Shown: positions 1 through 22,956 of the stretch, in pieces
Position numbering within the stretch: the first letter of the stretch is position 1
Layout of the letters: the number at the start of each line of letters is the position of its first letter
Virus record (IMG/VR): IMGVR_UViG_3300005859_000008
Coordinates: 1 to 26,564 of that record
Reading direction: 5' to 3' (one strand)
DNA length: 26,564 nt
Program-made: the position numbers and the translations under genes
The notes under the pieces: model-generated
Databases searched by the model: none
What the model saw: only the letters and a program-made list of their open reading frames with translations
Told to the model about the DNA's origin: nothing

Positions 1-22
1 AATATGAATATTGTGGTCTAGG

Positions 23-142
23 AAATTCCTAAATTCCTAAATTCCTAATTTCCTAAATTCCTAAGTTCCTAAATTCCTAAATTCCTAATTTCCTAAATTC
101 CTAAATTAGGAAGTTCCTAAATTAGGAAATTCCTAAATTCCA
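23..142. repeat. Rudiviral terminal 8-bp tandem repeat array (AAATTCCT)n, part of the inverted terminal repeat
   Basis: 15 in-phase 8-bp units (AAATTCCT with variants AATTTCCT, AAGTTCCT, AAATTAGG, AAATTCCA). Contains AAATTCCTAAATTCCTAAATT, the reverse complement of the conserved rudiviral terminal motif AATTTAGGAATTTAGGAATTT. Confidence 0.9.
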
Positions 143-1160
143 ATTTTGCTCCTTTTTTGCAAAAATTAATTAAATTTCGCACTAAAATTAATAAATTGGA
201 AATTCCTATTTTCCAAAATTCCAAAATTCCAAATAATTGTACATCTTGGAATAATATTCCTAAATTGAGAAATATTGGAAATTGCTAACTTCCAATTAAT
301 CTGTCATTTTGCAATAAAAAGTTAAAAAATTGGAAATTCCAAAATTTGGAATAATTTATCATCTCCAAATTTAAATTGGAGAAGTTTATAATATTGGAAA
401 ATTGGAAATTTGGAATAATTTGTCATCTGGAGATATTAATAGTTAATAGCTTTTAATTTGAAAATTAATAACTTTCCAGAACCAAAACTCCAATTAAAAG
501 CTGCAAAGTTACTAAACATATTTGAGAGTTCTTTAAATTAGAGAGTTATAAGTTATTAAATTTTATAGCTTTCGGGAACCAAAACTACAGTTTAAAGTTA
601 TATAGTTACTAAACATATTTGGAAGTTATTATATTTCTCCAGTTAGGATTTTTTGCGTTTGGAGCTGGAGAAATTGGAAGTTTAGAAAGAAAGATTTAAA
701 TAGCAGGAGAAAGCATTTTTTATATGTAGTGAGGAGTATCTTTCTCCTTTTTATTATTTTTTTATTTTTATTATTACCATTATAGAAAAAATATATTAAT
801 ATATTATTATAGTTTGTTAATTTATAAGTTTGTAAATTATGCAGCTATGTAATTTGCATATTATATAATTTGTTAATTATCATATTGCATAACTATGTAG
901 TTAGTAAATTATTATATTATAAGTTATAAGTTAATAGTTATAGTCAGATCCAAAATAGGTTATTTTACGCAATTTTACCGTTCGTAAACAATTTTTCTCT
1001 TCTAGAACGAGATAAATTGGAGGAATAAAAATAAGTTGTTTTTATGAACCATAATTTGCATATTTTAAAAATTTCAAGTTATGTAATTACAATTTTCAGT
1101 TTTATTTAGCAGGAGCTAAAGAAATTGGAGTAAAAGGATCAGAAATAAAAGTCACAAAAC
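143..1160. repeat. Non-coding terminal/ITR region with degenerate direct repeats
   Basis: No credible ORF. Many GGAAATT/AATTCC motifs. ~60-bp direct repeat with a 97-bp period (exact core AGTTACTAAACATATTTG at 507-524 and 604-621). AAATTTGGAATAATTT(A/G)TCATCT occurs twice (~342, ~406). The ITR extent cannot be set without the other genome end. Confidence 0.6.
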
Positions 1161-1163
1161 TAC

Positions 1164-1194
1164 AAAGATAAAAAGACAAAGAAAACTTTAAATA
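1164..1194 (+). promoter_or_regulatory. Early-type BRE/TATA promoter with no ORF downstream
   Basis: AAAGATAAAAAGACAAAGAAAACTTTAAATA, nearly identical to the promoters at 1512, 1981 and 3421. Confidence 0.65.
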
Positions 1195-1511
1195 TAGGTT
1201 TTGACATACATTAATTTGAGAAAGAAAGAAAGCCCGCACTCTGGCTCGTTTTTCTCCTTTTCCAAATAAAAATACAAAGCTTAGCCAATTTGGAATTATC
1301 TCGTTTTTCTCATAAAAATGTAAAAAACAATAATTGCGAAAAAAATGTAATTTTTGAGAAATTTGAAATTTGTAAATTTTTCCAAAAAAACGAAATAATT
1401 CATATTTGTGAAAAAAATGAAAAAATGAAGAAAATTGGAATTTTCAGATTTTCTATGCAGGTTTGAGAGAAATTGGAAATGATGTCGAAAGTTTGAGATT
1501 TTTAAAAGTAT

Positions 1512-1542
1512 AAAGATAAAAAGCTAAAGAAAACTTTATAAA
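1512..1542 (+). promoter_or_regulatory. Early-type BRE/TATA promoter
   Basis: AAAGATAAAAAGCTAAAGAAAACTTTATAAA, ~35 nt before ATG 1577, followed by a GGGG SD-like site. Confidence 0.75.
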
Positions 1543-1576
1543 GGAGGAGATGTACAAAGTATAATTGGGGAAAAAT

Positions 1577-1822
1577 ATGATAACACAAAGTTTAAAAATT
1601 TCACAAGAACAAGCTAAGTCAATAAAACAATTAGCCCAGTTTTTTGGTAATTGGGCCGAATTTGAATATGCAGGTATAATATTTGAGTTTTGGATAATGA
1701 AGATGCCGATAAACAATGATAATGAAAAAATTGGTGAAGAAAATGTTTATGGGATAATTTGTAAGAGTTCTTGTAACAATTCGTTATGGTTTGAAATACA
1801 ACATCAGAGTTACTTTGATTAA
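1577..1822 (+). CDS. Small early hypothetical protein (81 aa), anti-defence candidate
   Basis: ATG 1577 follows TGGGGAAAAAT and a strong promoter, so it is preferred over the track TTG at 1565. T-tract after the stop. Confidence 0.75.
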   Translation: MITQSLKISQEQAKSIKQLAQFFGNWAEFEYAGIIFEFWIMKMPINNDNEKIGEENVYGIICKSSCNNSLWFEIQHQSYFD

Positions 1823-1875
1823 ACTATTTTTTTTATTTTTTCTTATTTTTCTCCATACTATTTCTTATTTTACAA

Positions 1876-2012
1876 TTTAGCCAAGATTATCGGTATTTTT
1901 TTTCAGTTTTATGATAAAAATACAAAGCAGGTTAAAATTGTAAGATATTGTTAGTAACATTAAAGAAAATGAAAGATAGAGATGTAAAAAGCTAAAGAAA
2001 AATTTATATATG
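1876..2012 (+). repeat. Early-gene upstream cassette block, copy A (includes BRE/TATA)
   Basis: Aligns without gaps to 3316-3452 (offset 1440). Related copies at ~1231, ~2441, ~2895-3030 and ~3797. Confidence 0.85.
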
Positions 2013-2045
2013 TGTTTTGACATAATGTATATTGGGGAAAACAAA

Positions 2046-2363
2046 ATGAACGTGCAAAACAAACAAGAAAAAGAATTAAATGAAAAGGTAAATCAAATAT
2101 TGGAAAAGGTAAAGGAGGAGGGTGAAATTTTTTTAGTTACCCTTACTCCTGAGCAGTTGAGAAGTACTGGATTTGAAGAAGATGAGGACTTCTGGAATTT
2201 CGAATATGTATTCATATATGTTCAATATGACGGAGTATACAAGATAAAGTACGAATTTAACGGTGACCCGTCAAATGTACTGTATGAAACTATAGACGAT
2301 ATAGGAAGTTTCAAAGATTTTGTAGAAGTTTTGAAGAAATATCTTAGTTTCAGAAAATATTGA
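2046..2363 (+). CDS. Small acidic early hypothetical protein (105 aa), anti-defence/Acr candidate
   Basis: ATG 2046 follows GGGGAAAACAAA; the track start at 2010 sits at the 3' edge of the TATA box. E/D-rich. Long T-tract after the stop. Confidence 0.8.
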   Translation: MNVQNKQEKELNEKVNQILEKVKEEGEIFLVTLTPEQLRSTGFEEDEDFWNFEYVFIYVQYDGVYKIKYEFNGDPSNVLYETIDDIGSFKDFVEVLKKYLSFRKY

Positions 2364-2569
2364 TTTTTTTATTTTCTCCAATTTTTTTTAGCTTATTTTT
2401 TTCTTTTTGAGTTTCTATTTCCCCAATTTCATTTTCCAAATTAGCCTAAACTCTGGAAAATTTTTCTCAGTTTCCAAATACTAATTGTAAATGTATAAAA
2501 ATTGTAGACACAAAGATAAAGATGTCTTTAAATTTGTCGTAAGATATATTTTGTTTTTAGTGATTTTAG

Positions 2570-2827
2570 ATGGTCTTAACTAAAAAGATAGAAAAAGTTG
2601 AGACATATTTTTGTGAAAAATGTGGTAAAAAATTATTAGAAAAATTGTCAAACAAAAATAATATAATTTATAACGGTTGTGACCATTACATTTGGTATAT
2701 TCTTCCATATGATTATTATCAACAACAATCGATTGTGGAAGGTAAGAAGTATGTGGAATGGCTGAAGAAAAATAAAGAGTTAATGGTCCAAAGTGGAAAA
2801 GAAGTATATTTTCTGATGAAAAAGTAA
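2570..2827 (+). CDS. Putative Zn-ribbon protein, CxxC...CDHY (85 aa)
   Basis: CEKC and GCDHY motifs; paralog of 3482 and 4791; TTTAAATTTGTC promoter at ~2527. Confidence 0.8.
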   Translation: MVLTKKIEKVETYFCEKCGKKLLEKLSNKNNIIYNGCDHYIWYILPYDYYQQQSIVEGKKYVEWLKKNKELMVQSGKEVYFLMKK

Positions 2828-3063
2828 TTATAGTTTTTTAATTTCTAATTTGTAAATTCAGAATTTGCATATTTGCAGTTGTTAATTTCCTAATTTTGGA
2901 AAAATTGTATAGAGTTTTTCTCAGTTTACAATTCGAAATACAAAGCAGGTCAAAATTGTTCATTAACGTTAATGACGTTAAAAATAACGAAAGATAAAAA
3001 GGTGAAAAGATAGAGATAAATTTATAAAGGGGCAATTACATATGTTATATTGGGGATAAAAAA

Positions 3064-3231
3064 ATGAAAACAATAAATGTGAATGGGACAAAATATTACA
3101 TACAAACAAAAGATGATTTAATAAGTTTAGTTCATCAGTTGGTAAAACAAGGCTATTCGGTACAACAGATTGCAAAATTATTAGATGTAACCGAAAGAAC
3201 CGTAAGAAAATATTTAAATGACTGCTGGTAA
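3064..3231 (+). CDS. HTH DNA-binding protein, SIRV2 Gp1 (ORF83a)/SIRV1 ORF56a-like (55 aa); absent from the ORF track
   Basis: Hand translation: MKTINVNGTKYYIQTKDDLISLVHQLVKQGYSVQQIAKLLDVTERTVRKYLNDCW. Classic HTH (GYSVQQIAKLLDVTERTVRKYL), GGGGA SD, early promoter at ~3005-3028. Confidence 0.88.
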   Translation: MKTINVNGTKYYIQTKDDLISLVHQLVKQGYSVQQIAKLLDVTERTVRKYLNDCW

Positions 3232-3315
3232 GTTAGTTATTTTTTTATTTTCCAAATTTCAAGTTATCAATTTTTTATTTTCTAGTTCTACTTTTTCTCA
3301 TTTTTCAATTTACTA

Positions 3316-3452
3316 TTTAGCCAAGATTATGGAGAATTTTTTTCAAGTTTGAGATAAAATTACAAAGCAGTTAGAAAATACAAGATAACGACAGTAATGT
3401 TAAAGAAAACGAGAGATAGAGATGTAAAAAGACAAAGAAAAATTTAAATATG
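3316..3452 (+). repeat. Early-gene upstream cassette block, copy B (includes BRE/TATA)
   Basis: Ungapped match to 1876-2012. Confidence 0.85.
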
Positions 3453-3481
3453 AGAGAAGGGATAATATAAATTGAGGAGAA

Positions 3482-3745
3482 ATGATAGAAAGGGTAAGAA
3501 CAAAAGATTCAGTTATATATAAATGTGTAGGTTGTAATAAAGTTCTAGGAGAATTAACTGACGTTGGAGAGGTAATTGTAAAGCCAAGTTGTGAACATTA
3601 CAGATGGATAGAAAGTTCAAGCGAATGTTATTATTATATGCTTCCTGGATGTGGAAGAAGTTATATAAGATGGTTAAAGGAGAATTATGTTTTAAAGCTG
3701 GAGTCTCCAGGAACTGTTTTTCTTTTAATTCCAAGACAAAGTTAA
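3482..3745 (+). CDS. Putative Zn-ribbon protein, CxxC...CEHY (87 aa), SIRV ORF90-like
   Basis: CVGC and SCEHY motifs; GAGGAG SD; early promoter; T-tract terminator. Confidence 0.82.
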   Translation: MIERVRTKDSVIYKCVGCNKVLGELTDVGEVIVKPSCEHYRWIESSSECYYYMLPGCGRSYIRWLKENYVLKLESPGTVFLLIPRQS

Positions 3746-4035
3746 TTTTTTTATTTCAAGTTTTCAATTTCTAGTTCTTAATTTTTAATTTATAAATTAG
3801 CTAAGATTATGGACAATTTTTCTCCTTCTCCAAATAAAAATACAAAGATGATAAAAACTAATTTACAATATGAGTAATATTGCATATTGGACGTTTGAAA
3901 ACTGTAAAACTGCAGTTTTTTGGGTCTTTTTGATAATTTTCTTCTAGATACAAGGAGGAGAGAAAGTGGAGATGAAGAGATAAAGAGAGTTTTATATTTG
4001 TCATAAAGAATATGTAATTTTAGGGGGATAAAAAG

Positions 4036-4599
4036 ATGGGAAATTTAAGAGTTCAAGTTCAATATAAAGATGGAAAATACCCTTACTTTTTCGATAAGGA
4101 ACTAAATATAACTGGAATAGGTTCTAGAAATAAAGGTAGAGCTATTTATACGAGTGGAAAATTGGTTAAAGAAGAAAATGGAAAAAGTTATATGGATTTT
4201 GAACAGATTAGTCCAATAACAGTAAAATTACAAAATGCTAAAATAACGGTTACACAGTCAGGAACTTTAGTAATAAAACCAGAAGAAAGTTCAACACTTT
4301 ATGTTGTAGAAATTCCAGGCGGATATAGGGGAAGTCCTACTACTGAAATTCTATATGGAGATTGCCAAAAGACTAGTATATTAATGTCTCCTGCTGGAAG
4401 TTTAGGCGTTATAGAACATCTTTGGTGTAATGGAAATGCAGAATTTTTGTACAGTATTTCTGGTAGAACTAGAACTGCTGGATTTGAAAATTTAATTGAA
4501 TTATTTGGAGAAAATTTGAATGGAAGAATAATGATAAAAGATGGAAATGTTAAAGTAATTTATGATGAGGAATTAGATAAATTACTAAACGATTCTTAG
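4036..4599 (+). CDS. Hypothetical beta-rich protein (187 aa)
   Basis: Long ORF, AGGGGGA SD, TTTTATATTTGTC promoter at ~3989; Gly-rich motifs GGYRGS and SPAGSLG. Confidence 0.85.
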   Translation: MGNLRVQVQYKDGKYPYFFDKELNITGIGSRNKGRAIYTSGKLVKEENGKSYMDFEQISPITVKLQNAKITVTQSGTLVIKPEESSTLYVVEIPGGYRGSPTTEILYGDCQKTSILMSPAGSLGVIEHLWCNGNAEFLYSISGRTRTAGFENLIELFGENLNGRIMIKDGNVKVIYDEELDKLLNDS

Positions 4600-4611
4600 G
4601 AGGGGAAGAAA

Positions 4612-4791
4612 ATGACATTAACAAAAGAACAAAAAGAAATTTTGGAAAGAATGTATAATAGGATAGATTATATTATTCAAAAGTATAAAGAGTATTTAGA
4701 TGCTTTATCTGAATTTGATAAAAATGGAGTATTGAAAATTCATGGGAAAGTTCTTTATGTAAGAAAATTCGATAAAAAGGTGAATAAATAA
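4612..4791 (+). CDS. Small protein (59 aa), possible viral antitoxin mimic; absent from the ORF track
   Basis: Hand translation: MTLTKEQKEILERMYNRIDYIIQKYKEYLDALSEFDKNGVLKIHGKVLYVRKFDKKVNK. GGAGGGG SD; stop overlaps the next ATG (TAATG). The ORF is well supported; the function is inferred. Confidence 0.8.
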   Translation: MTLTKEQKEILERMYNRIDYIIQKYKEYLDALSEFDKNGVLKIHGKVLYVRKFDKKVNK

Positions 4792-5018
4792 TGAATGTAA
4801 AATTAGAAAATTACGGGAATATGATAATATATAAATGTCCAAGATGTTATAGAGAATTAATAATTAAAGAGAATGGATATTTTGCATTTACTAATAATTG
4901 TGAGCATTATAAAGTTTATATATTACGTTCTAACGATATTATTCCATGCCAAAAAGATAAAAAAGAAGCCGAATTTATAGATGATAATGGATGGATGTAT
5001 GTAATTTGTAAAAAGTAA
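4791..5018 (+). CDS. Putative Zn-ribbon protein, CxxC...CEHY (75 aa)
   Basis: CPRC and NCEHY motifs; AGGTGA SD; translationally coupled to the upstream ORF. Confidence 0.8.
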   Translation: MNVKLENYGNMIIYKCPRCYRELIIKENGYFAFTNNCEHYKVYILRSNDIIPCQKDKKEAEFIDDNGWMYVICKK

Positions 5019-5031
5019 TCATGGTGAGATA

Positions 5032-5343
5032 ATGTTTCTAGATAATGAGGATGATTTACTTGGAAATGTTACAATAGAAAAACATAATGATTATTTTGAA
5101 ATTGTCTTTACGAAAAGTTACAGATGTACAATTTCAAATTATAAGGAAGGATATTGTTTAGTAGAACATATAAATAACGGCTGGCTTTCTGATGTTTATT
5201 TTATATCTTATGAAAAACTTGGAGCCAAAAATCTTGGTGAATTATTTTGTTTGTTAATGAAAAAACCAAGAGAAATTGTAAAATTGCTTACAGAGAATGA
5301 TATACCAATAGACAAACTTATTGTGAAATATTTTGATAACTAG
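5032..5343 (+). CDS. Hypothetical protein (103 aa)
   Basis: GGTGAG SD; last gene of the 4036-5343 operon; T-tract follows. Confidence 0.78.
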   Translation: MFLDNEDDLLGNVTIEKHNDYFEIVFTKSYRCTISNYKEGYCLVEHINNGWLSDVYFISYEKLGAKNLGELFCLLMKKPREIVKLLTENDIPIDKLIVKYFDN

Positions 5344-5384
5344 TATTGATTATTTTTTTAATTGTCATTTTTTAACTTTAATTT

Positions 5385-5579
5385 ATGGAATGTGAAATAT
5401 GGAAATATTTTCTTCATGGAAAGACACATGACCTTTATGGACTAATAATTCTCTTTATTCTATCTTTTATTCTTTATTTTACAGTTCAAACTGAAATTCA
5501 AAAGATAATTACAATCTTTCAGCTTATAATTATAACTGGAATTTTTGTTGATTTATGGTCTCATTGCTTCCATCATTAA
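5385..5579 (+). CDS. Small two-TM membrane protein (64 aa)
   Basis: Two hydrophobic stretches (LYGLIILFILSFILYF; IITIFQLIIITGIFV). TTTAATTGTC promoter upstream suggests a leaderless transcript. Confidence 0.7.
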   Translation: MECEIWKYFLHGKTHDLYGLIILFILSFILYFTVQTEIQKIITIFQLIIITGIFVDLWSHCFHH

Positions 5580-5601
5580 AAAATGAAAAAAATAGATTAG
5601 C

Positions 5602-6321
5602 TTAAAATATCTTTTTTAATCTATCTACAATTTTTTCTATATCTTTTACGAGCGATTTTACAGTACTTACATCACTTTCTGGAAGTTCTAATATTAGTCT
5701 TTGTGTAACAATTTGTCCTAAATTATCTATCAGAAATTGATAGCTTTGAACAATATATGGGTCTGGAGGATAATTCACATAAATTCCAGTCTGATATTCA
5801 TATTCCACAATCTCCGTAAAATCATAAACTACAGTAAATAGATTCTGATTTAATGGAGTTACTTCCAATAATTGTCCAGATAAACTTTGTAAATTATTAA
5901 ATCCGTACTCTGGAGCTATAATTACAGAGTTTGGTGGAATTTGGAAGACAAAAGCTATAGTTCTATTGCTCAATTTATTCCTTACAATTGCTAAAGAATA
6001 AAGTGGAATATTATTCAAATTAGTTATGAAGTTTGACAAATCATTAGCAAAGTAAACCTCAGCAAATGCATTACCAAATAGATATTGTGGAATTGTATAA
6101 GTCTGTCCATTTAATGTTATTTCTGCTCCTCTGAGGAGAGATACAAGTATTGAAGAATTTGTTTTGTTTTGCATTATCCAATCTACTCTTCCTTGTGATT
6201 GATTGTATGTATAATATAGAGTCAATTTTTCATTTTGCCATAGTAAATTGGCATTTTGTGGTATAGATGTATCGACTTTGATTTGTTTTATATCTGTATA
6301 TGTTTTCCTCATTTTTATCAA
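5602..6321 (-). CDS. Rudiviral hypothetical protein (~236-239 aa; possibly SIRV1 ORF241-like)
   Basis: Long ORF. Start is TTG 6321 or ATG 6312. TTTTTAATGTC promoter on the minus strand at ~6339-6349. Confidence 0.85.
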   Translation of the reverse strand: MIKMRKTYTDIKQIKVDTSIPQNANLLWQNEKLTLYYTYNQSQGRVDWIMQNKTNSSILVSLLRGAEITLNGQTYTIPQYLFGNAFAEVYFANDLSNFITNLNNIPLYSLAIVRNKLSNRTIAFVFQIPPNSVIIAPEYGFNNLQSLSGQLLEVTPLNQNLFTVVYDFTEIVEYEYQTGIYVNYPPDPYIVQSYQFLIDNLGQIVTQRLILELPESDVSTVKSLVKDIEKIVDRLKKIF

Positions 6322-6350
6322 AATATAATTTTAATTATGACATTAAAAAG

Positions 6351-6530
6351 TTAATATACTCCTAAATCTTCAGAATTGTATATTCTTATTTTATTTTCTC
6401 TTATTTTTTCTGACAAAATTATTAGTCCGTTAGCTATTATTTCATTAATTTTCTCATTTCCATTTACATTTTCTATTTCAAAAATTACTTTAATAATTAT
6501 TTTATTCCCTTTCTTGGAATAAATTATCAT
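6351..6530 (-). CDS. Hypothetical protein (59 aa); absent from the ORF track
   Basis: Hand translation: MIIYSKKGNKIIIKVIFEIENVNGNEKINEIIANGLIILSEKIRENKIRIYNSEDLGVY. Fills the gap; divergent from 6595 around a shared TTTTAAA box. Confidence 0.6.
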   Translation of the reverse strand: MIIYSKKGNKIIIKVIFEIENVNGNEKINEIIANGLIILSEKIRENKIRIYNSEDLGVY

Positions 6531-6594
6531 AACTTAAAATAAGAATAAAAATGATTTTAAATATGTCATATTTCTAAACAGAATATGATTAGAT

Positions 6595-7116
6595 ATGTAT
6601 ATAGTTTTACGGGAATTGGATAAAGAAAAATTTAGGAAAAATATCATTACATGGTTAGACGGTGATGATGTTATTGAAAGTTGTTTTACTGATTTTAAAT
6701 ATGTTGTTACAGAAACAGTAATCCAAATGATTTCTGAAGTTGTAGAAAAAGATGATTGGAATTTACAATATTTTAACGAAAAGGAATCAGAAAGATTATT
6801 TAAGGCATTTATGGAAAATTCTAAAATTACGATTAGATTAATTAAACAGATTGATGAAGTAAATTATGTATTTGATGAAATTATTGTTGAATTTGATTTT
6901 TCGGAAATTGAGAAAAAAGAAATTGTGGAAATATATCTAGATAATATACTTAATGAATGTCAATATTTAGAAAGATGTATATTTGATAGTTTAGAAGAAT
7001 TAAATATAGATTTAATAACAGAACTTCTTAGTGACCAAATTTATCAATTTTTAAGTCCTGAGGAAATAAAGAAGAAATTTAAAGATAAAATAGAGAAAAT
7101 TGTAAATAATAAATAA
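6595..7116 (+). CDS. Acidic hypothetical protein (173 aa), paralog of 7204-7773
   Basis: Shared blocks ESC(F/Y)T(D/N)FK and LSPEEIKxxFKDKIE; TTTTAAATATGTC promoter. Confidence 0.85.
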   Translation: MYIVLRELDKEKFRKNIITWLDGDDVIESCFTDFKYVVTETVIQMISEVVEKDDWNLQYFNEKESERLFKAFMENSKITIRLIKQIDEVNYVFDEIIVEFDFSEIEKKEIVEIYLDNILNECQYLERCIFDSLEELNIDLITELLSDQIYQFLSPEEIKKKFKDKIEKIVNNK

Positions 7117-10039: not shown

Positions 10040-10465
10040 TTAAGAAAGAAATTTTAAAATGTCATTTGTATCTTTTAACAATTCTATTTTTTGTCTGGAA
10101 TAATTTTTCAGATGATAAAGTGCATGTGGAAATTTCGCATTTCCCATTCTATTCATAAATATCATTATTAAAGAATTTTGTTCATATAACATTCTAAACC
10201 AGGAAGGAGTAGGGTCAAATGGTAGATATAATAAAACTTCACTTCCATTTTTATTACTTTCTATAGCTTTTATTATAAATGGTTTTTTAATAGAAAATGG
10301 TGGGTTACAATAAGAATGATTTGGCCATAATTTTTCTACTGCATTGAATTTAGTTTTATCTAAACAAACGTCTATAAATTTTAATTCATTTGTAATAATA
10401 TTATAAACTGCTTCAGGTGTTGGTTTATTGTCATGTATAGCCCTTTTCGGATATTTAAGTGTCAT
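10040..10465 (-). CDS. Phage-type DNA N6-adenine methyltransferase (Dam-like, PF05869-type; 141 aa)
   Basis: PTPEAVY, IDVC, catalytic YCNPPFS, KA, then LYLPFDPTPSWF, in the order typical of the small phage Dam family. Own TTTAATTTGTC promoter. Confidence 0.82.
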   Translation of the reverse strand: MTLKYPKRAIHDNKPTPEAVYNIITNELKFIDVCLDKTKFNAVEKLWPNHSYCNPPFSIKKPFIIKAIESNKNGSEVLLYLPFDPTPSWFRMLYEQNSLIMIFMNRMGNAKFPHALYHLKNYSRQKIELLKDTNDILKFLS

Positions 10466-12823: not shown

Positions 12824-12880
12824 AATTACTTCTCAGTTTCATGACAATTTTAAATATTTTCAAACAAATGTGAAAGTGAC

Positions 12881-13029
12881 AACAATATGCTATATTAATA
12901 ATATAAGGAATATTGTGTTGTTTACATGTTTCCATGGGAATTTAAGAACAATAAGGGCAATTAATATACATAATATGATATATGAGATATATGGTTTTAT
13001 TTATGTCATTTTAGAAATTTACACTTATG
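12881..13029 (+). repeat. Left arm of a 149-bp inverted repeat (promoter region of the 265-aa gene)
   Basis: Ungapped reverse-complement match to 17710-17858; hand count 113/149; 22-bp exact core at 12962-12983. Confidence 0.85.
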
Positions 13030-13824
13030 AGTGTAACATATACATCTATATCGGAATTATTAGCCTCACCATTTCAAAGACTTACATCATCTATGTGGAA
13101 CACGGCAACACTTCTTCTAATACAACTTTACGAAACAGGAGGAAATGCTGTGACATCAATTCTAAAAAACGGAAACTTGACAATTCCAGGGTCAATAATT
13201 GCTAGTTCTGGAAATTTCTACGAAGAAATTTATGTAGATGGACAGCCAGTTCTTACAGAACAAGACCCAATATACATTGCTGGATTTATAGCTACAGCTA
13301 ATGAACAAATAAATCAAATTGTCTATTCAAATCAACAACTTTATTATGCAATTTTGAAACTTCCTGAAGAAATTTATAATATAATTTCACAAAATTTTGA
13401 TAATATTTCTAATTCAATTTATTCTGCAATTAATTCAATTTCTGAAAAAATAAGTTTTCCATTTGAAGATGCAATTTATTCTGTAATTTATGCTTTAACT
13501 TATTTCTATTTAGCTACAGTTAGTTTAGCTAAAACATTTAACAAACTTTCATTATATTTATCCCCTCCAACAATAGAAGGACTACAATTAGATATAGATA
13601 CAATACCTTCTCCACTTTATTCAGGCCCAACAATTGAAACTGTAAGAATAATCTTACAAAATTTAAGTAATCAAATAGTTTATATTGGAAATCAATTGTA
13701 TAATAATTTCCCAATTTTTCCTAATGACAGTATAGAATTACATGTTAATAATCCAAGTAATATTTACGCTTGGGCAACTGGAAAATGTAAAGTTTACGCT
13801 CTATTCGAAGTAGTACAGAGTTAG
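13027..13824 (+). CDS. Conserved rudiviral protein, SIRV ORF268/269-like, probably virion-associated (265 aa)
   Basis: Size and synteny with the methyltransferase; shares N- and C-terminal motifs with the ORF564-like protein. Confidence 0.85.
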   Translation: MSVTYTSISELLASPFQRLTSSMWNTATLLLIQLYETGGNAVTSILKNGNLTIPGSIIASSGNFYEEIYVDGQPVLTEQDPIYIAGFIATANEQINQIVYSNQQLYYAILKLPEEIYNIISQNFDNISNSIYSAINSISEKISFPFEDAIYSVIYALTYFYLATVSLAKTFNKLSLYLSPPTIEGLQLDIDTIPSPLYSGPTIETVRIILQNLSNQIVYIGNQLYNNFPIFPNDSIELHVNNPSNIYAWATGKCKVYALFEVVQS

Positions 13825-16038: not shown

Positions 16039-17712
16039 TTAGGTTAAAATTGTTATTTCTTGTGGTTGAGAATTTATAGGCATTAAATTATTTGGCGGAT
16101 AAGTCCTTACTCTCAACCAATAAACTATCATTCCATTTGGAGCATAAGATGCCTCATTATTTCCTACCATGATTTCAAAAGGCAGAGATGCTGTATTTGA
16201 CGCCTCAACGATATATCCAGTAGTAATTTGATAGTTTTGAAAAGTATAATATAATGTTGAAGTATAGATATGTGACCAAATTGAAACAGGAAATAAATTG
16301 TTAGAAGGTGTAGAAAGATTTCCGTAAAAAGAATTTCCACCTTGATTTGACCTTACTTCTGCATTATTTCCACCTTCAAAATCTAGAAGTGTATATGTCC
16401 CTCCTTGAGAAGGAAATCCGTAACTAGAAGATAAATAATTGCTAAATCCCACCATATTCCAGCCCCAAGAATCTCCTGATGGACTTGTTGATTGTGTTCC
16501 ATAATATTCAATTATAATTGGTGGAGAATACGAATTTACAGTAGCTATACCGTTTTCTCCTCCAGCTTCTGTAGTTCCGCCCTTTATTGTCACACCGTTA
16601 TTAAATGTTACAGTTCCGTTGCTCTGATATACATTTATTCCATTTGGAGATGAATTACCAACAAAATTCCAATAATCTACAAATACATTTTCACCATTAT
16701 CATATTGTGCATATACAGAAGTTAGTTGTGGTGCCATCCCAGTGTAAGGATATTGTATAGAATTTCTAACAAACATATATATAGTCAATGAACCATTAGC
16801 TGGAATTGAAATTGGTAAATTAATCCAAATATAAACATTTGTTAAATTAGAATTATAGCTTTCTATCCATGAATAAAGTGAAGTATTACAATTAATATCT
16901 AGACAAAATTGTAAATTTAAAAGTTGAGATGGATTGGATAAAATATTAGATAAATCTAGTTGTAATAATTGTTGAAATGGAGTTGGAGTTGGGTCTGATT
17001 GGTTGTTTGTTATAGTAATTGTATAAGCAGTTGTTGGACTTTGAATAAACCCAATCTCTAGACTTAATAAAGTTGGATCAGTAGCATTTAATTCAATTTC
17101 AGATGGAGAACTTGTTGTTATTTTTAAACAATTTTTAGGCATTAAATAAATCGCGTTATTTATCTGAACTGTAGAATTTCCTAAATTCTGAATTTGTATT
17201 TCTCTCCAAGTTTGTAGATAAGACGGGTCAAGATAATTCTTAATAAGTTCTTCAATAGTTGAAGTTCCAGAAAATGTAAATTGTGTTCCAGCAATTTGTG
17301 ACGGAGTTACAATTTTTGAAATTACTTTTGGAATCAAAAGTTGTATTTGTCTATATATTTTTGACAATTGTATTTGAAAATTTGGAATTTGTGTTATAAC
17401 ATTTTGTAATTCTATAGAAGGTTTAATAGACATATCTAGAAATGGTTGTTGTTTCCCCTGACCAAAAGTATAAGCTTGAGGTTGAGATAAATTATGTAAA
17501 ACGTTATATCCATTTACTTTTAAAGCTGAAACGTATAACATTTTTGCAATTATTTCATTTAGATTTTGTAAATTGTAATTTTGATAATATTGAAGAAGTT
17601 TTGCGGAACCATATTGATCCAAAAACAGAAGATTTTTGACAAAGTTATTCCAGTCCTGAAGTGTTAGATATTCTAATGGAAGTTTAAACTTGACTGGATA
17701 TGGTGTAGGCAT
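16039..17712 (-). CDS. Minor structural protein, SIRV2 ORF564-like, with DUF2341-like/beta-sandwich C-terminal region (557 aa)
   Basis: ITITNNQ..PTPFQQLL..YSWIES..IWINLP..IPAN..TIYM..YDNGENVF signature. Start placed at ATG 17712 because it is the exact mirror of ATG 13027 in the inverted repeat (the track gives TTG 17736). Confidence 0.85.
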   Translation of the reverse strand: MPTPYPVKFKLPLEYLTLQDWNNFVKNLLFLDQYGSAKLLQYYQNYNLQNLNEIIAKMLYVSALKVNGYNVLHNLSQPQAYTFGQGKQQPFLDMSIKPSIELQNVITQIPNFQIQLSKIYRQIQLLIPKVISKIVTPSQIAGTQFTFSGTSTIEELIKNYLDPSYLQTWREIQIQNLGNSTVQINNAIYLMPKNCLKITTSSPSEIELNATDPTLLSLEIGFIQSPTTAYTITITNNQSDPTPTPFQQLLQLDLSNILSNPSQLLNLQFCLDINCNTSLYSWIESYNSNLTNVYIWINLPISIPANGSLTIYMFVRNSIQYPYTGMAPQLTSVYAQYDNGENVFVDYWNFVGNSSPNGINVYQSNGTVTFNNGVTIKGGTTEAGGENGIATVNSYSPPIIIEYYGTQSTSPSGDSWGWNMVGFSNYLSSSYGFPSQGGTYTLLDFEGGNNAEVRSNQGGNSFYGNLSTPSNNLFPVSIWSHIYTSTLYYTFQNYQITTGYIVEASNTASLPFEIMVGNNEASYAPNGMIVYWLRVRTYPPNNLMPINSQPQEITILT

Positions 17713-17858
17713 TAAATACATTTTATAAATTGACAAAAATAAAGTGACATAACTTATATATCATATTATGTATATTACTTGTCATTACTATTCTTAACTT
17801 TTTACGTTAAATTAGAAACAACACAATATACCTTATATTATATATATGGCATATTGTT
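17710..17858 (-). repeat. Right arm of the 149-bp inverted repeat (promoter region of the ORF564-like gene)
   Basis: Mirror of 12881-13029 (paired coordinates sum to 30739). Confidence 0.85.
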
Positions 17859-17865
17859 AGTCTTT

Positions 17866-18681
17866 TCAAGTTTTGAAATTTTTCATATATTCTATAACTT
17901 TCATAATATCAAGATGTGTATCTTTTTGGATTTGTAATATGTAATTTTGGTCTTGTAAAATCTGTAATATTTTATCTTTGTTTTGTACAAAGAAATTATA
18001 AAGTTCTGGATGATTTTGATACCAATCATTTTTTCCATTTTTTAAATCATTATCAATTTCTCCAAGAAGAAACGCTAATTGTCTAACATCAATTTCTTTT
18101 CTAACTGATTTAAATATTACTCCTAGTACAGAGAAATAGGGTTTATACTTATAGAGACACATGTTAAAATTTCTTCCTTCTTTACAACTTACTTTCTTCG
18201 GATTATAAATTTTAGCTACTAAACCCTCAAGTCTTTCTTTAGTTATAATTTCAATTAAATCATCTATGTCAAGATAAAATTCTGGAAACCAATTCCAAAT
18301 TGTACTATCTAATCTTAAGGGATGTACATATTTTCCAAGCTCTTTGTCAAAGACATCATATATGATAAATTGTGGAATTTCATTTGTATGGATTTGTAAT
18401 GCTGACGTCTTTTTATGTACAAGTTCCCCATGAATTATATATTGTGAATGTTCTTTTAAATAATTTACAACTTCCTCAATTCCTGGAACTTTCATAAAGA
18501 GTTCTTGAAAAGATTTGTCATGAGGTATATCTTTTCTAGTATTTATTTCTAATATTCCTTGATATTTCAAACAAATATGTGTTCCGTCATATTTTATTTG
18601 ATAATATACATCTTCTTCTAGATTTTTTAAATCTTGATAACTTATATTTTCAGCTTCGTAATGACATAGATTTGTTTGCAT
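17866..18681 (-). CDS. ATP-dependent RNA-ligase-type nucleotidyltransferase (271 aa)
   Basis: Motif I KYDG, Ia TR, III HGELV, IIIa FIIYDV, IV EGLVAK, V YKYK. Short helical-looking C-terminus with no obvious OB fold. Own TAAATAAATTTGTC promoter. Confidence 0.85.
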   Translation of the reverse strand: MQTNLCHYEAENISYQDLKNLEEDVYYQIKYDGTHICLKYQGILEINTRKDIPHDKSFQELFMKVPGIEEVVNYLKEHSQYIIHGELVHKKTSALQIHTNEIPQFIIYDVFDKELGKYVHPLRLDSTIWNWFPEFYLDIDDLIEIITKERLEGLVAKIYNPKKVSCKEGRNFNMCLYKYKPYFSVLGVIFKSVRKEIDVRQLAFLLGEIDNDLKNGKNDWYQNHPELYNFFVQNKDKILQILQDQNYILQIQKDTHLDIMKVIEYMKNFKT

Positions 18682-22411: not shown

Positions 22412-22621
22412 TTAGGATTTTTCTTCTTCCTCTACTTTCACTTGCATTTTTCTCATTTCTTTAACAATTTTTACAACTTCTAAAGCTTTTTGGAAAACTT
22501 CAGATTTTCTAACATTTTCATCATCACATGTCGCTAAAGCCATAGTCAAATCGTCAAGAGCTAGATATAGTTTAGCTATTGTCTCTGTATTCGAATTTGA
22601 CTTTCTTTTGTTTTCTGACAT
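22412..22621 (-). CDS. Conserved rudiviral helical protein, SIRV ORF69/70-like (69 aa)
   Basis: Overlaps the 3' end of the resolvase gene, as in SIRV; size match. Confidence 0.75.
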   Translation of the reverse strand: MSENKRKSNSNTETIAKLYLALDDLTMALATCDDENVRKSEVFQKALEVVKIVKEMRKMQVKVEEEEKS

Positions 22622-22937
22622 CTTGAGTCAGATTATAAATTATGACACTTTTATGTTTTTTATAATGTACAATTACTAACGGTCTACATGAACAAAAACT
22701 AAACATCTCACAAAATTCAAACAGTTTTTCTATTTGAAAAATATCTACAATAACGAAATCTTTAGATGTGGATTTTACTTCGATTGGAAAAATTGTATTA
22801 TCTTTCGTAGCTATGATATCTGGAATAGCCTGTTTTCCAGTTCCAGATACTGGTATTCTGATAGCGTTATAACCATTTTTATCTAAAAACTCTAATGTTT
22901 TATATTCATAATATTTTCCAGATTGTCTAATATTCAT
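22572..22937 (-). CDS. hjc: Archaeal-type Holliday junction resolvase (Hjc/Hjr, SIRV ORF121-like; 121 aa)
   Basis: GKYYE, RIPVSG, PDIIA, IEVKST (PD-(D/E)xK) motifs; ATG 22937. Confidence 0.95.
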   Translation of the reverse strand: MNIRQSGKYYEYKTLEFLDKNGYNAIRIPVSGTGKQAIPDIIATKDNTIFPIEVKSTSKDFVIVDIFQIEKLFEFCEMFSFCSCRPLVIVHYKKHKSVIIYNLTQDVRKQKKVKFEYRDNS

Positions 22938-22956
22938 CAAAACAAATTTAGAAATT

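Follow-up and report, generated by a model that had tools for sequence, protein, structure and literature searches.

A left-arm array of putative early anti-defence gene cassettes in a SIRV-like rudivirus

We analyzed a 26,564-nucleotide stretch of viral DNA (positions 1 to 26,564 of IMG/VR record IMGVR_UViG_3300005859_000008; hereafter the window), in which a series of small genes at 1150-5343 is interspersed with copies of a repeated DNA block. This array is likely the left-arm early anti-defence regulon of a virus related to the Sulfolobus islandicus rod-shaped viruses (SIRVs). It would be built of cassettes, each consisting of a promoter module (P), a small open reading frame (ORF) and a terminator-like module (D), and it would recombine by ordinary homologous recombination at the D and P copies. 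The evidence comes from the anatomy of the blocks, their conservation across genera, the identity of the cargo genes, and hybrid block copies found at junctions between related genomes.

Rudiviruses serve as the principal model of anti-CRISPR and anti-defence biology in archaea. Their anti-defence genes occupy the ends of the genome, where they share an early promoter. We know of no explanation so far for the fast turnover of this repertoire. The organization described here would offer a concrete mechanism, namely self-sufficient promoter-ORF-terminator cassettes that are cut and pasted at repeated terminator-promoter junctions.

The repeated block is a composite of two modules

The array at 1150-4035 consists of small genes that point inward, with a repeated composite block between them. 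An earlier note on this DNA, made from the letters alone, had described a single block of 140-170 bp upstream of most of the small genes. The repeat itself is real: the copies at 1876-2012 and 3316-3452 are identical at 111 of 137 positions (81%) in an ungapped alignment, compared with a mean of 31% (standard deviation 4%, maximum 53%) for random 137-mers from the same region. A repeat search extends the two copies to 211 nt (1831-2041 and 3271-3481, 75% identity) and adds a third one at 2849-3059 (65%). However, an alignment of the intergenic regions and scans with profile hidden Markov models (HMMs) split the block into two separable modules, the distal D and the proximal P. What had looked like one upstream block is the D module of the previous gene, a spacer, and the P module of the next gene. 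D and P alternate seven times in the window, with all modules on the plus strand, and the gap between them is exactly 36 bp ahead of the ORFs starting at 2046, 3064, and 3482. A cassette takes the form P, leader with Shine-Dalgarno sequence, small ORF, T-runs, and D. The earlier note had mentioned T-tracts and GGGG/GAGG Shine-Dalgarno sequences; a T6-T8 run lies no more than 10 nt past the stop codon of every gene in the array, and GGGG/GAGG/GGTGA-type Shine-Dalgarno sequences precede the ATGs. No Rfam match to the blocks was found in positions 1-6000 at E ≤ 1.

P comprises ~51 nt and is followed by a conserved leader; together they take up about 95 bp to the ATG. A logo of 77 copies from 11 genomes contains a purine-rich B recognition element (BRE), a TTTAWATA TATA box, a conserved GTTTTTACATAT stretch, and a GGnGA Shine-Dalgarno sequence, and the consensus ..TAGAGAAAA.TTTAaATA.. 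is common to all of them. The seven copies in the window match this consensus with nhmmer E-values between 1e-5 and 9e-7, in agreement with the earlier idea of a shared strong early promoter. According to Bhoobalan-Chitty et al. (2024; PMC11065993), the small genes expressed early at rudivirus termini, among them acrID1, acrIIIB1, and aca8, follow a strong BRE/TATA promoter whose surroundings are conserved. The promoter was used to predict anti-defence genes (ADGs) (PMC11065993). Judged by its sequence, P is this early promoter together with its leader. The P copies are 80-95% identical across viruses whose cargo genes share 65-72% identity or are unrelated; this higher conservation relative to the coding sequences argues for selection on the regulatory DNA. 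The P half of the block is thus already known, and what is new here is the D module, the D-P composite, and the evidence from junctions.

D measures ~60 nt and lies about 10-40 bp upstream of the next P. Its core AATTTTTCTCA is nearly invariant, and a logo of 54 copies shows conserved flanks as well (..TTATG.. upstream, ..ATA..A.T.C.A downstream), giving the consensus ..TTATG(N4-5)AATTTTTCTCA(N2)TTT(N3)ATA(N2)A(N1)T(N1)C(N1)A. Both the invariant core AATTTTTCTC and TTTTTCTC conform to TTTTTYT, the motif at which transcripts of SSV1 and Sulfolobus terminate (PMC9608457). TTTTTCTC is over-represented in the window (14 occurrences vs. 4.4 expected), with eight copies on the plus strand at 992-3824. 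Among 53 unique D copies, 50 are located no more than 130 nt (median 50) past the stop codon of an inward-oriented ORF. P follows 28 of these ORF-trailing copies (median gap 22 nt), the other 22 lack it, and none of the 53 precedes a P without also following an ORF end. Because D trails gene stops and its core fits TTTTTYT, we read it as probably a terminator or insulator module of the preceding gene. The bare T-run signal does not explain the conserved flanks, and the ~50 conserved positions around it suggest an additional bound factor. D is a candidate for a compact terminator or insulator in Sulfolobales genetics.

The earlier note had proposed scanning rudivirus and lipothrixvirus genomes with a profile of the block. 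With HMMs derived from the window, we found D in the terminal arms of all ten fetched SIRV genomes, including the Icelandic SIRV2 (E-values down to 1e-6). In the window and in these ten genomes, D and P occur in the terminal arms only, always point inward, and follow a P-gene-D-P alternation; the HMM scans detected no copies in the core regions. Two significant D-like copies are also present in ARV1 (L026; 39% G+C, Italy), directly after the stop codons of gp15 and gp36. They are located at 4114-4154 and at 22307-22260(-), with the core ATTTTTCTCA..TTTGGATAATA, and the gp36 copy faces a convergent gene, with nothing to promote. In the lipothrixvirus SIFV, D-like modules alternate with P-like promoters in the cluster SIFV0018-0021 at 8.2-10.3 kb (L027, 680-2294(-)). 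The occurrences in ARV1 and SIFV indicate that the element is shared across families of the Ligamenvirales. The distant rudiviruses SRV and SBRV1 gave only weak or isolated D and P matches, and the full D-P composite is a feature of the SIRV clade. The 2024 study looked, within each genome separately, at no more than the 100 bp ahead of every ATG (PMC11065993), which places D outside its view. Searching for D in addition to P should sharpen cassette boundaries and the prediction of anti-defence genes in metagenomic Ligamenvirales.

We also considered other roles for D. ARV1 and SIFV are listed among the viruses without Aca8 (PMC11065993), the regulator that is also encoded in the array (see below); since both nevertheless carry D-like modules, D is unlikely to be an Aca8 operator, and this was rejected as its main role. 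A function as second promoter of the downstream gene is disfavored by the 22 of 53 copies without a detectable P or gene arrangement downstream, by the absence of any D that precedes a P but lacks an ORF end before it, and by the ARV1 copy that faces a convergent gene. A small ORF within D was rejected too, as the ATG in 'GATTATGGA' is not conserved and the reading frame extends over seven codons at most. A search for a conserved hairpin, as in bacterial-type terminators, yielded only two weak hairpins between 1000 and 5500, no more than in shuffled sequences. Some Yellowstone D copies contain a TCTCAA..TTGAGA palindrome that is absent from the window and SIRV2 copies, and the 54-copy consensus contains no conserved inverted repeat.

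Cargo and units of the array

The genes of the array all lie on the plus strand, and most of them belong to known families of rudiviral terminal genes. ORF2046 (2046..2363, 105 aa) is a member of the ADG.07 family: it matches phrog_15508 (E 1e-35) and shows DNA homology to SIRV10 gp01 and SIRV8 gp06, both listed as ADG.07 (PMC11065993, Suppl. Data 1). ORF3482 (3482..3745, 87 aa) encodes a CxxC...CxHY zinc-finger protein of the ADG.20 family, with 47% identity (E 5e-19) to the protein encoded at 32221-32484 of isolate V65, which is listed as ADG.20 (PMC11065993). Another zinc-finger protein of this type is encoded by ORF2570 (2570..2827, 85 aa), a paralogue of ORF3482 (BLASTP E 2e-10). Between them lies aca8 (ORF3064, 3064..3231), which encodes a 55-aa helix-turn-helix regulator. 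It matches phrog_7067 over its full length (E 6e-28) and the HTH_7 domain (E 6e-8), and is 44% identical to SIRV2 Aca8 (corrected start 1222) and 60% identical to SIRV8 gp09, which is listed as Aca8 (PMC11065993). ORF1577 (1577..1822, 81 aa) is an ORFan without any PHROG, Pfam, or tblastn match and is absent from the related contig L016.

Downstream, a four-gene operon at 4036..5343 is preceded by a single P; its genes were assigned from matches to phrog_13554 and phrog_12592 and from the ADG cluster lists. ORF4036 belongs to ADG.06 and is homologous to SIRV5 gp50. ORF4612 belongs to ADG.17, a Phd-like viral antitoxin family, and is homologous to SIRV8 gp05. ORF4791 is a further zinc-finger paralogue of the ADG.20 type, more weakly related to ORF3482 (E 5e-4). 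ORF5032 has one homologue, in isolate V3, where it is a single gene driven by P; like ORF1577, it has no listed ADG family. Among the cargo families, only ADG.17 has an experimentally tested member, SMV1 gp44, which was shown to bind the host Doc toxin. ORF4612 is the second gene of an operon in the window and a single gene elsewhere in SIRV8/9/10 and in the related contig L012; its DNA is 82-91% identical to these copies, well above its neighbors. The earlier note had regarded every cargo ORF as an anti-defence candidate. This fits the assignments to ADG.06, ADG.07, ADG.17, and ADG.20, but not ORF3064, which is a regulator rather than an effector.

The same note had called the cargo ORFs unrelated, which holds for most families and fails for the paralogues ORF2570, ORF3482, and ORF4791. 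These paralogues would fit a history in which one promoter-gene-terminator unit was duplicated in tandem and its cargo diverged beyond recognition while the blocks changed more slowly, as would a 249-bp tandem duplication containing P in SIRV4 and the direct repeat of 1085-1195 at 1433-1543. We find it quite unlikely that the array is such a remnant. Most cargo families are unrelated, and orthologues of ADG.07, ADG.06, ADG.17, and Aca8 occupy other positions or the other end in other viruses. The modules are older than this array, since the Icelandic SIRV2 has both D and P, and D also occurs in ARV1 and SIFV. Moreover, the blocks are better conserved than the coding DNA, which points to selection rather than slow decay.

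The six ORFs noted earlier are joined by a seventh, "empty" unit at 1150..1229. It consists of an orphan P (1150-1200) with an aca8-type promoter and leader but no ORF, and is 80-83% identical to the aca8 promoter and leader of SIRV8, SIRV10, and SIRV2 up to the ATG. Promoter and leader run directly into two tandem D modules at 1223-1282 and 1275-1328 (nhmmer E 1.7e-11 and 1.3e-4), the whole stretch spanning 1150-1330. In the first of them, a GC-rich mini-hairpin at 1230-1247 (AGCCCGCACTCTGGCT) precedes TTTTTCTC; such a hairpin is odd for a genome with 25% G+C. Because the empty unit is 95.7% conserved in L016, it may be functional, as a very short transcript, a decoy, or an insulator, instead of a mere scar. 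It is followed by a degenerate D-like stretch (1371-1405) and by a fragment derived from the inverted terminal repeat (ITR) at 1404-1452, which matches ITR positions of all relatives at 86%.

The remaining modules follow in regular order. P of ORF1577 is located at 1498-1548 (nhmmer E 7e-6) and the D after this gene at 1871-1930 (E 7e-12). P of ORF2046 (1966-2016; 1966..2045 including leader and Shine-Dalgarno sequence) is 84-87% identical to promoters in SIRV4/5/11. At 2435..2540, D (2435-2494) abuts P (2490-2540). Ahead of aca8, alignment and HMM scans place a D with a degenerate 5' half (2889-2948) and, after the 36-bp spacer, P (2984-3034; composite 2889..3034). The best-conserved composite, recovered by repeat search, alignment, and HMM scans alike, lies at 3311..3456, with D at 3311-3370 and P at 3406-3456, again 36 bp apart. 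The last D of the series is at 3791-3850, and the P of the ORF4036 operon, found by HMM scan, at 3954-4004 (3954..4035 with its leader).

Recombination junctions between relatives

The swappable array envisaged in the earlier note implies that gene order and content are not fixed across relatives, and both indeed differ: the group that contains aca8, for example, occupies the left arm of SIRV8/9/10 and the right arm of SIRV4/5/11. We compared inward-oriented 7-kb arms from ten SIRV genomes at an identity of at least 85%. In several indels between isolates, the insert lies between two block copies in one genome, the other genome has a single copy, and the alignments overlap there. This pattern of two copies against one is what unequal homologous exchange among the copies of the block would leave behind. 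Between SIRV8/9 and SIRV10, the difference is the 712-bp gp10 cassette, with an overlap of 113 bp reaching from just before D into P; the single block of SIRV10 is a hybrid whose left part resembles block A and whose right part resembles block B of SIRV8. For SIRV5 and SIRV4, the difference amounts to 564 bp, the overlap of 63 bp lies in P and leader, and the crossover is just 3' of the P core. Here, the SIRV4 promoter is a hybrid that follows P(gp01) of SIRV5 as far as the leader and has switched to P(gp02) at the Shine-Dalgarno sequence. Overlaps of 39 and 41 bp in P were found for SIRV8 vs. SIRV9 (420 bp) and for V3 vs. V60 (408 bp), respectively, whereas for V65 vs. V60 (589 bp) the overlap lies just downstream of D.

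Hybrid junctions are also found at the blocks of the window itself. Four related contigs were found for the window; L012 (UViG_3300005859_000005) stems from the same sample, and L016 and L021 are used below as well. Compared with the window, L021 shows 83.7% identity at 3366-3847 and 99.75% at 3801-7000, with the jump in identity inside D 3791-3850. In L021, two D copies flank an extra cassette of 77 aa, and the single D of the window combines the left half of the first with the right half of the second, switching at the AATTTTTCTC core. In L016, aca8 is identical and the left half of D 3791-3850 is shared. From the same core on, L016 diverges and carries different cargo, namely a 236-aa ORF, a further zinc-finger ORF, and, at another position, an ORF resembling ADG.07. 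The window, L016, and L021 thus diverge at the same 10-nt D core. L016 also lacks 1386-2482 of the window, that is, the ORF1577 and ORF2046 cassettes; this junction is at TTTCCAA, which lies both in D 2435-2494 and in the D-like stretch 1371-1405. L012 is collinear with the window at 2501-3377 (84%). Downstream of its aca8, the composite of D, spacer, and P is retained as far as the ATG, apart from 108 bp inserted between the two modules. This insert (L012 866-975) is relatively G+C-rich, has a counterpart in L021 (589-686), and is absent from the window. Between P/leader (~3481) and 3975, the window carries ORF3482 and L012 three ORFs of 113, 150, and 131 aa; homology resumes at 3975, inside P of ORF4036.

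As these are metagenome contigs, mosaics between the window and L012, L016, and L021 might also have been created by assemblers switching between co-occurring strains at shared repeats. L021 would fit such a case: its positions 1-790 share 99.6% identity with L012, its sequence from 1613 onward shares 99.75% with the window, and the junctions lie at P/leader and at the D core. This contig could be a natural (three-way) recombinant of very recent origin or else a chimera of the assembly. As a general explanation, this artefact is unlikely. Comparisons of isolates are free of this doubt, because the same type of junction is found between the plaque-purified SIRV4/5/8/9/10 and V3/V60/V65. In addition, unique sequence makes up the middle of L021 and a large part of L016, and the repeat itself lies within one contig.

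The divergence of the window, L016, and L021 exactly at the D core, together with the conservation of D across the Ligamenvirales, could also be expected if a viral or host recombinase used the core (AATTTTTCTC) as an attachment site. We regard this as highly improbable. The Pfam scan detected no integrase or recombinase domain in 33 scanned ORFs of the window, a contig without the right arm, and no integrase is annotated in the fetched SIRV genome records. Crossovers are also found in P, leader, T-runs, and coding sequence, and every cassette comes with a promoter, which integron cassettes do not. The longest identical stretch is, moreover, the D core, and homologous exchange is expected to resolve there. 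With no att-type sites found either, the description of the array as integron-like, put forward in the earlier note, had to be abandoned.

Several points weigh against the reading of the array as P-ORF-D cassettes that recombine homologously. For the arms, we collected breakpoints as 99 deduplicated alignment ends. Of these, 69 lie no more than 40 bp from a module, a significant enrichment over the 27% expected under a whole-arm null model, and 26 fall into coding DNA, compared with 58% expected (p 9e-11). Under an intergenic-only null model the enrichment disappears: 33 of 73 breakpoints lie in HMM-defined modules, with 39% expected (p 0.18), and the bulk statistics are what survivorship alone would give if gene-breaking events are purged. 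Some exchanges do not involve blocks at all. ORF4791 is replaced in L012 by a D, a P, and a 242-aa ORF with junctions at the gene edges, the homology of ORF4612 to its relatives is confined to the coding sequence while the gene occurs in different contexts, and one event between isolates (SIRV5 gp03/gp04 vs. SIRV11 gp02) lies inside paralogous coding sequence. L021, as discussed, could be an assembly chimera. Finally, the T-runs right after each stop codon could already terminate transcription, which would leave the conserved flanks of D unexplained, and both the early timing and the termination at D are carried over from the SIRV2 and SSV1 literature and from position.

A rival account is a purely regulatory conservation of the blocks. 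They would then be alike because each gene needs the same promoter, leader, and terminator, illegitimate recombination would strike anywhere with only intergenic events surviving, and the blocks would play no special role. The loss of enrichment under the intergenic null model, the depletion of breakpoints in coding DNA, and the swaps without block junctions all speak for this account, the coding depletion being what survivorship predicts. We nevertheless judge it rather unlikely, because illegitimate events would not produce one hybrid copy opposite two flanking copies with overlaps of 39-113 bp in at least four isolate pairs and again at D 3791-3850, nor place the divergence of three genomes in one and the same D core of 10 nt. 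As the statistics are no proof, the case for recombination rests on the anatomy of the hybrid junctions, and this anatomy supports that recombination has repeatedly happened at these blocks. The earlier proposal that swap breakpoints fall inside the blocks is therefore borne out by the hybrid junctions in the isolates, L012, L016, and L021, but not by the contexts of ORF4791 and ORF4612 or the intergenic null model. The blocks have likely served as sites of recombination, either under selection for that role or as a by-product of being repeated regulatory DNA.

Under homologous recombination between cassettes, the array would work as follows. P would drive all cassettes including aca8 right after infection, and Aca8 would presumably shut off the set later, an order of events carried over from SIRV2 (PMC11065993). 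D would terminate or insulate the preceding gene 10-40 bp before the next promoter. With six or seven near-identical direct copies within 3 kb, a recombinogenic replication, and a Hjc-type Holliday-junction resolvase, which a domain scan of the window ORFs located at 22572-22940, homologous recombination could take place. Unequal crossing-over, or exchange between co-infecting genomes, would occur between D or P copies. Such exchanges would delete, duplicate, insert, or swap whole cassettes, and the survivors would keep a working promoter and terminator.

The window as a whole has a G+C content of 25%, is identical to IMG/VR contig UViG_3300005859_000008 (= Ga0080003_1000484), and represents the left end and core of a new SIRV-like rudivirus. 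Its core (~5.3-25 kb) is 77-79% identical, in inverted orientation, to the Yellowstone viruses SIRV4-11 and the isolates V3/V60/V65. Positions 1-1100 resemble the ITRs of the same viruses. Within them, the terminal tandem-repeat region at 1..720 is the inner part of the ITR, with 65-77% similarity to ~1-1100 of both SIRV genome ends. No ITR partner was found within the window, indicating that the right arm and end are missing. In the structural-gene region, a 179-nt inverted repeat (12866-13044 and 17695-17873) is 73% complementary with its arms 4.65 kb apart. On the minus strand, a 271-aa ORF (17866-18681) shows weak matches to RNA-ligase and ATP-dependent DNA-ligase domains (E 4e-6 and 2e-5), and a 141-aa ORF (10040-10465) matches Dam-type methyltransferases (E 2e-8).

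Relation to known systems

In all features that can be tested in sequence, the array belongs to the early anti-defence regulon published for rudiviruses (PMC11065993). Both are made up of small single genes clustered at the termini. Each gene follows the same promoter and leader, and several genes share the purine-rich BRE and the TTTAWATA box and point inward. In both, aca8 is under the same promoter (in the window, ORF3064 with P 2984-3034), and the cargo includes ADG.06, ADG.07, ADG.17, and ADG.20. The differences are that the D module and the D-P composite were not described there and that the virus of the window is outside the set studied. Recombination is never mentioned in the main text of the 2024 paper (PMC11065993). 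The SIRV population papers that were read for these terms place variable genes at the termini and make no mention of promoter/terminator blocks as junctions.

D resembles the TTTTTYT terminators of SSV1 and Sulfolobus (PMC9608457) in that its core TTTTTCTC fits this motif and lies shortly before the next promoter. It differs in having ~50 more conserved positions that are common to rudiviruses and a lipothrixvirus. With integrons, the array shares the arrangement of small, exchangeable adaptive genes in one orientation. In contrast to them, neither an IntI-type integrase nor attI/attC sites were found in the window, each cassette has a promoter and terminator of its own instead of a single Pc, and the junctions vary.

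By analogy, the closest mechanistic counterpart is provided by the promoter-early stem-loops (PeSLs) of T4-type phages, and we prefer the term PeSL-like over integron-like. PeSLs are small composite terminator/promoter motifs repeated in hyperplastic regions (PMC2839356, PMC4122927). The blocks of the window resemble them, with a promoter half that matches by sequence and a terminator half that is probable from the TTTTTYT core and the place of D after stop codons. They flank non-essential ORFs of unknown function, and indels and replacements bounded by the motifs have been ascribed to homologous recombination (PMC2839356, PMC4122927). The window likewise contains many direct copies confined to the plastic terminal arms, and indels and replacements between relatives are bounded by the motifs, with hybrid copies at the junctions, although this does not apply to all events. 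PeSLs combine a stem-loop terminator with a sigma-70-like promoter, whereas the window has a T-run motif without a conserved hairpin and archaeal BRE/TATA elements, in a terminal array on a linear genome of a virus with an archaeal host. Physical evidence exists for PeSL mini-circles, while the rudiviral cassettes are known from sequence alone. The parallel suggests that viruses in two domains of life have hit on a common solution for accessory genes, which stay expressible and can still be exchanged.

A more far-reaching version of this comparison, which we put forward tentatively and consider doubtful, would make the D-P composite the archaeal counterpart of the T4 PeSL, a portable regulatory "adapter" of rudiviruses and at least one lipothrixvirus in the same hosts. 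Cassettes could then move between arms, co-infecting strains, and even virus families by homologous recombination, possibly via excised circles. If so, the part of D outside the T-run would not be passive sequence but a binding site, perhaps of a factor in termination or recombination.

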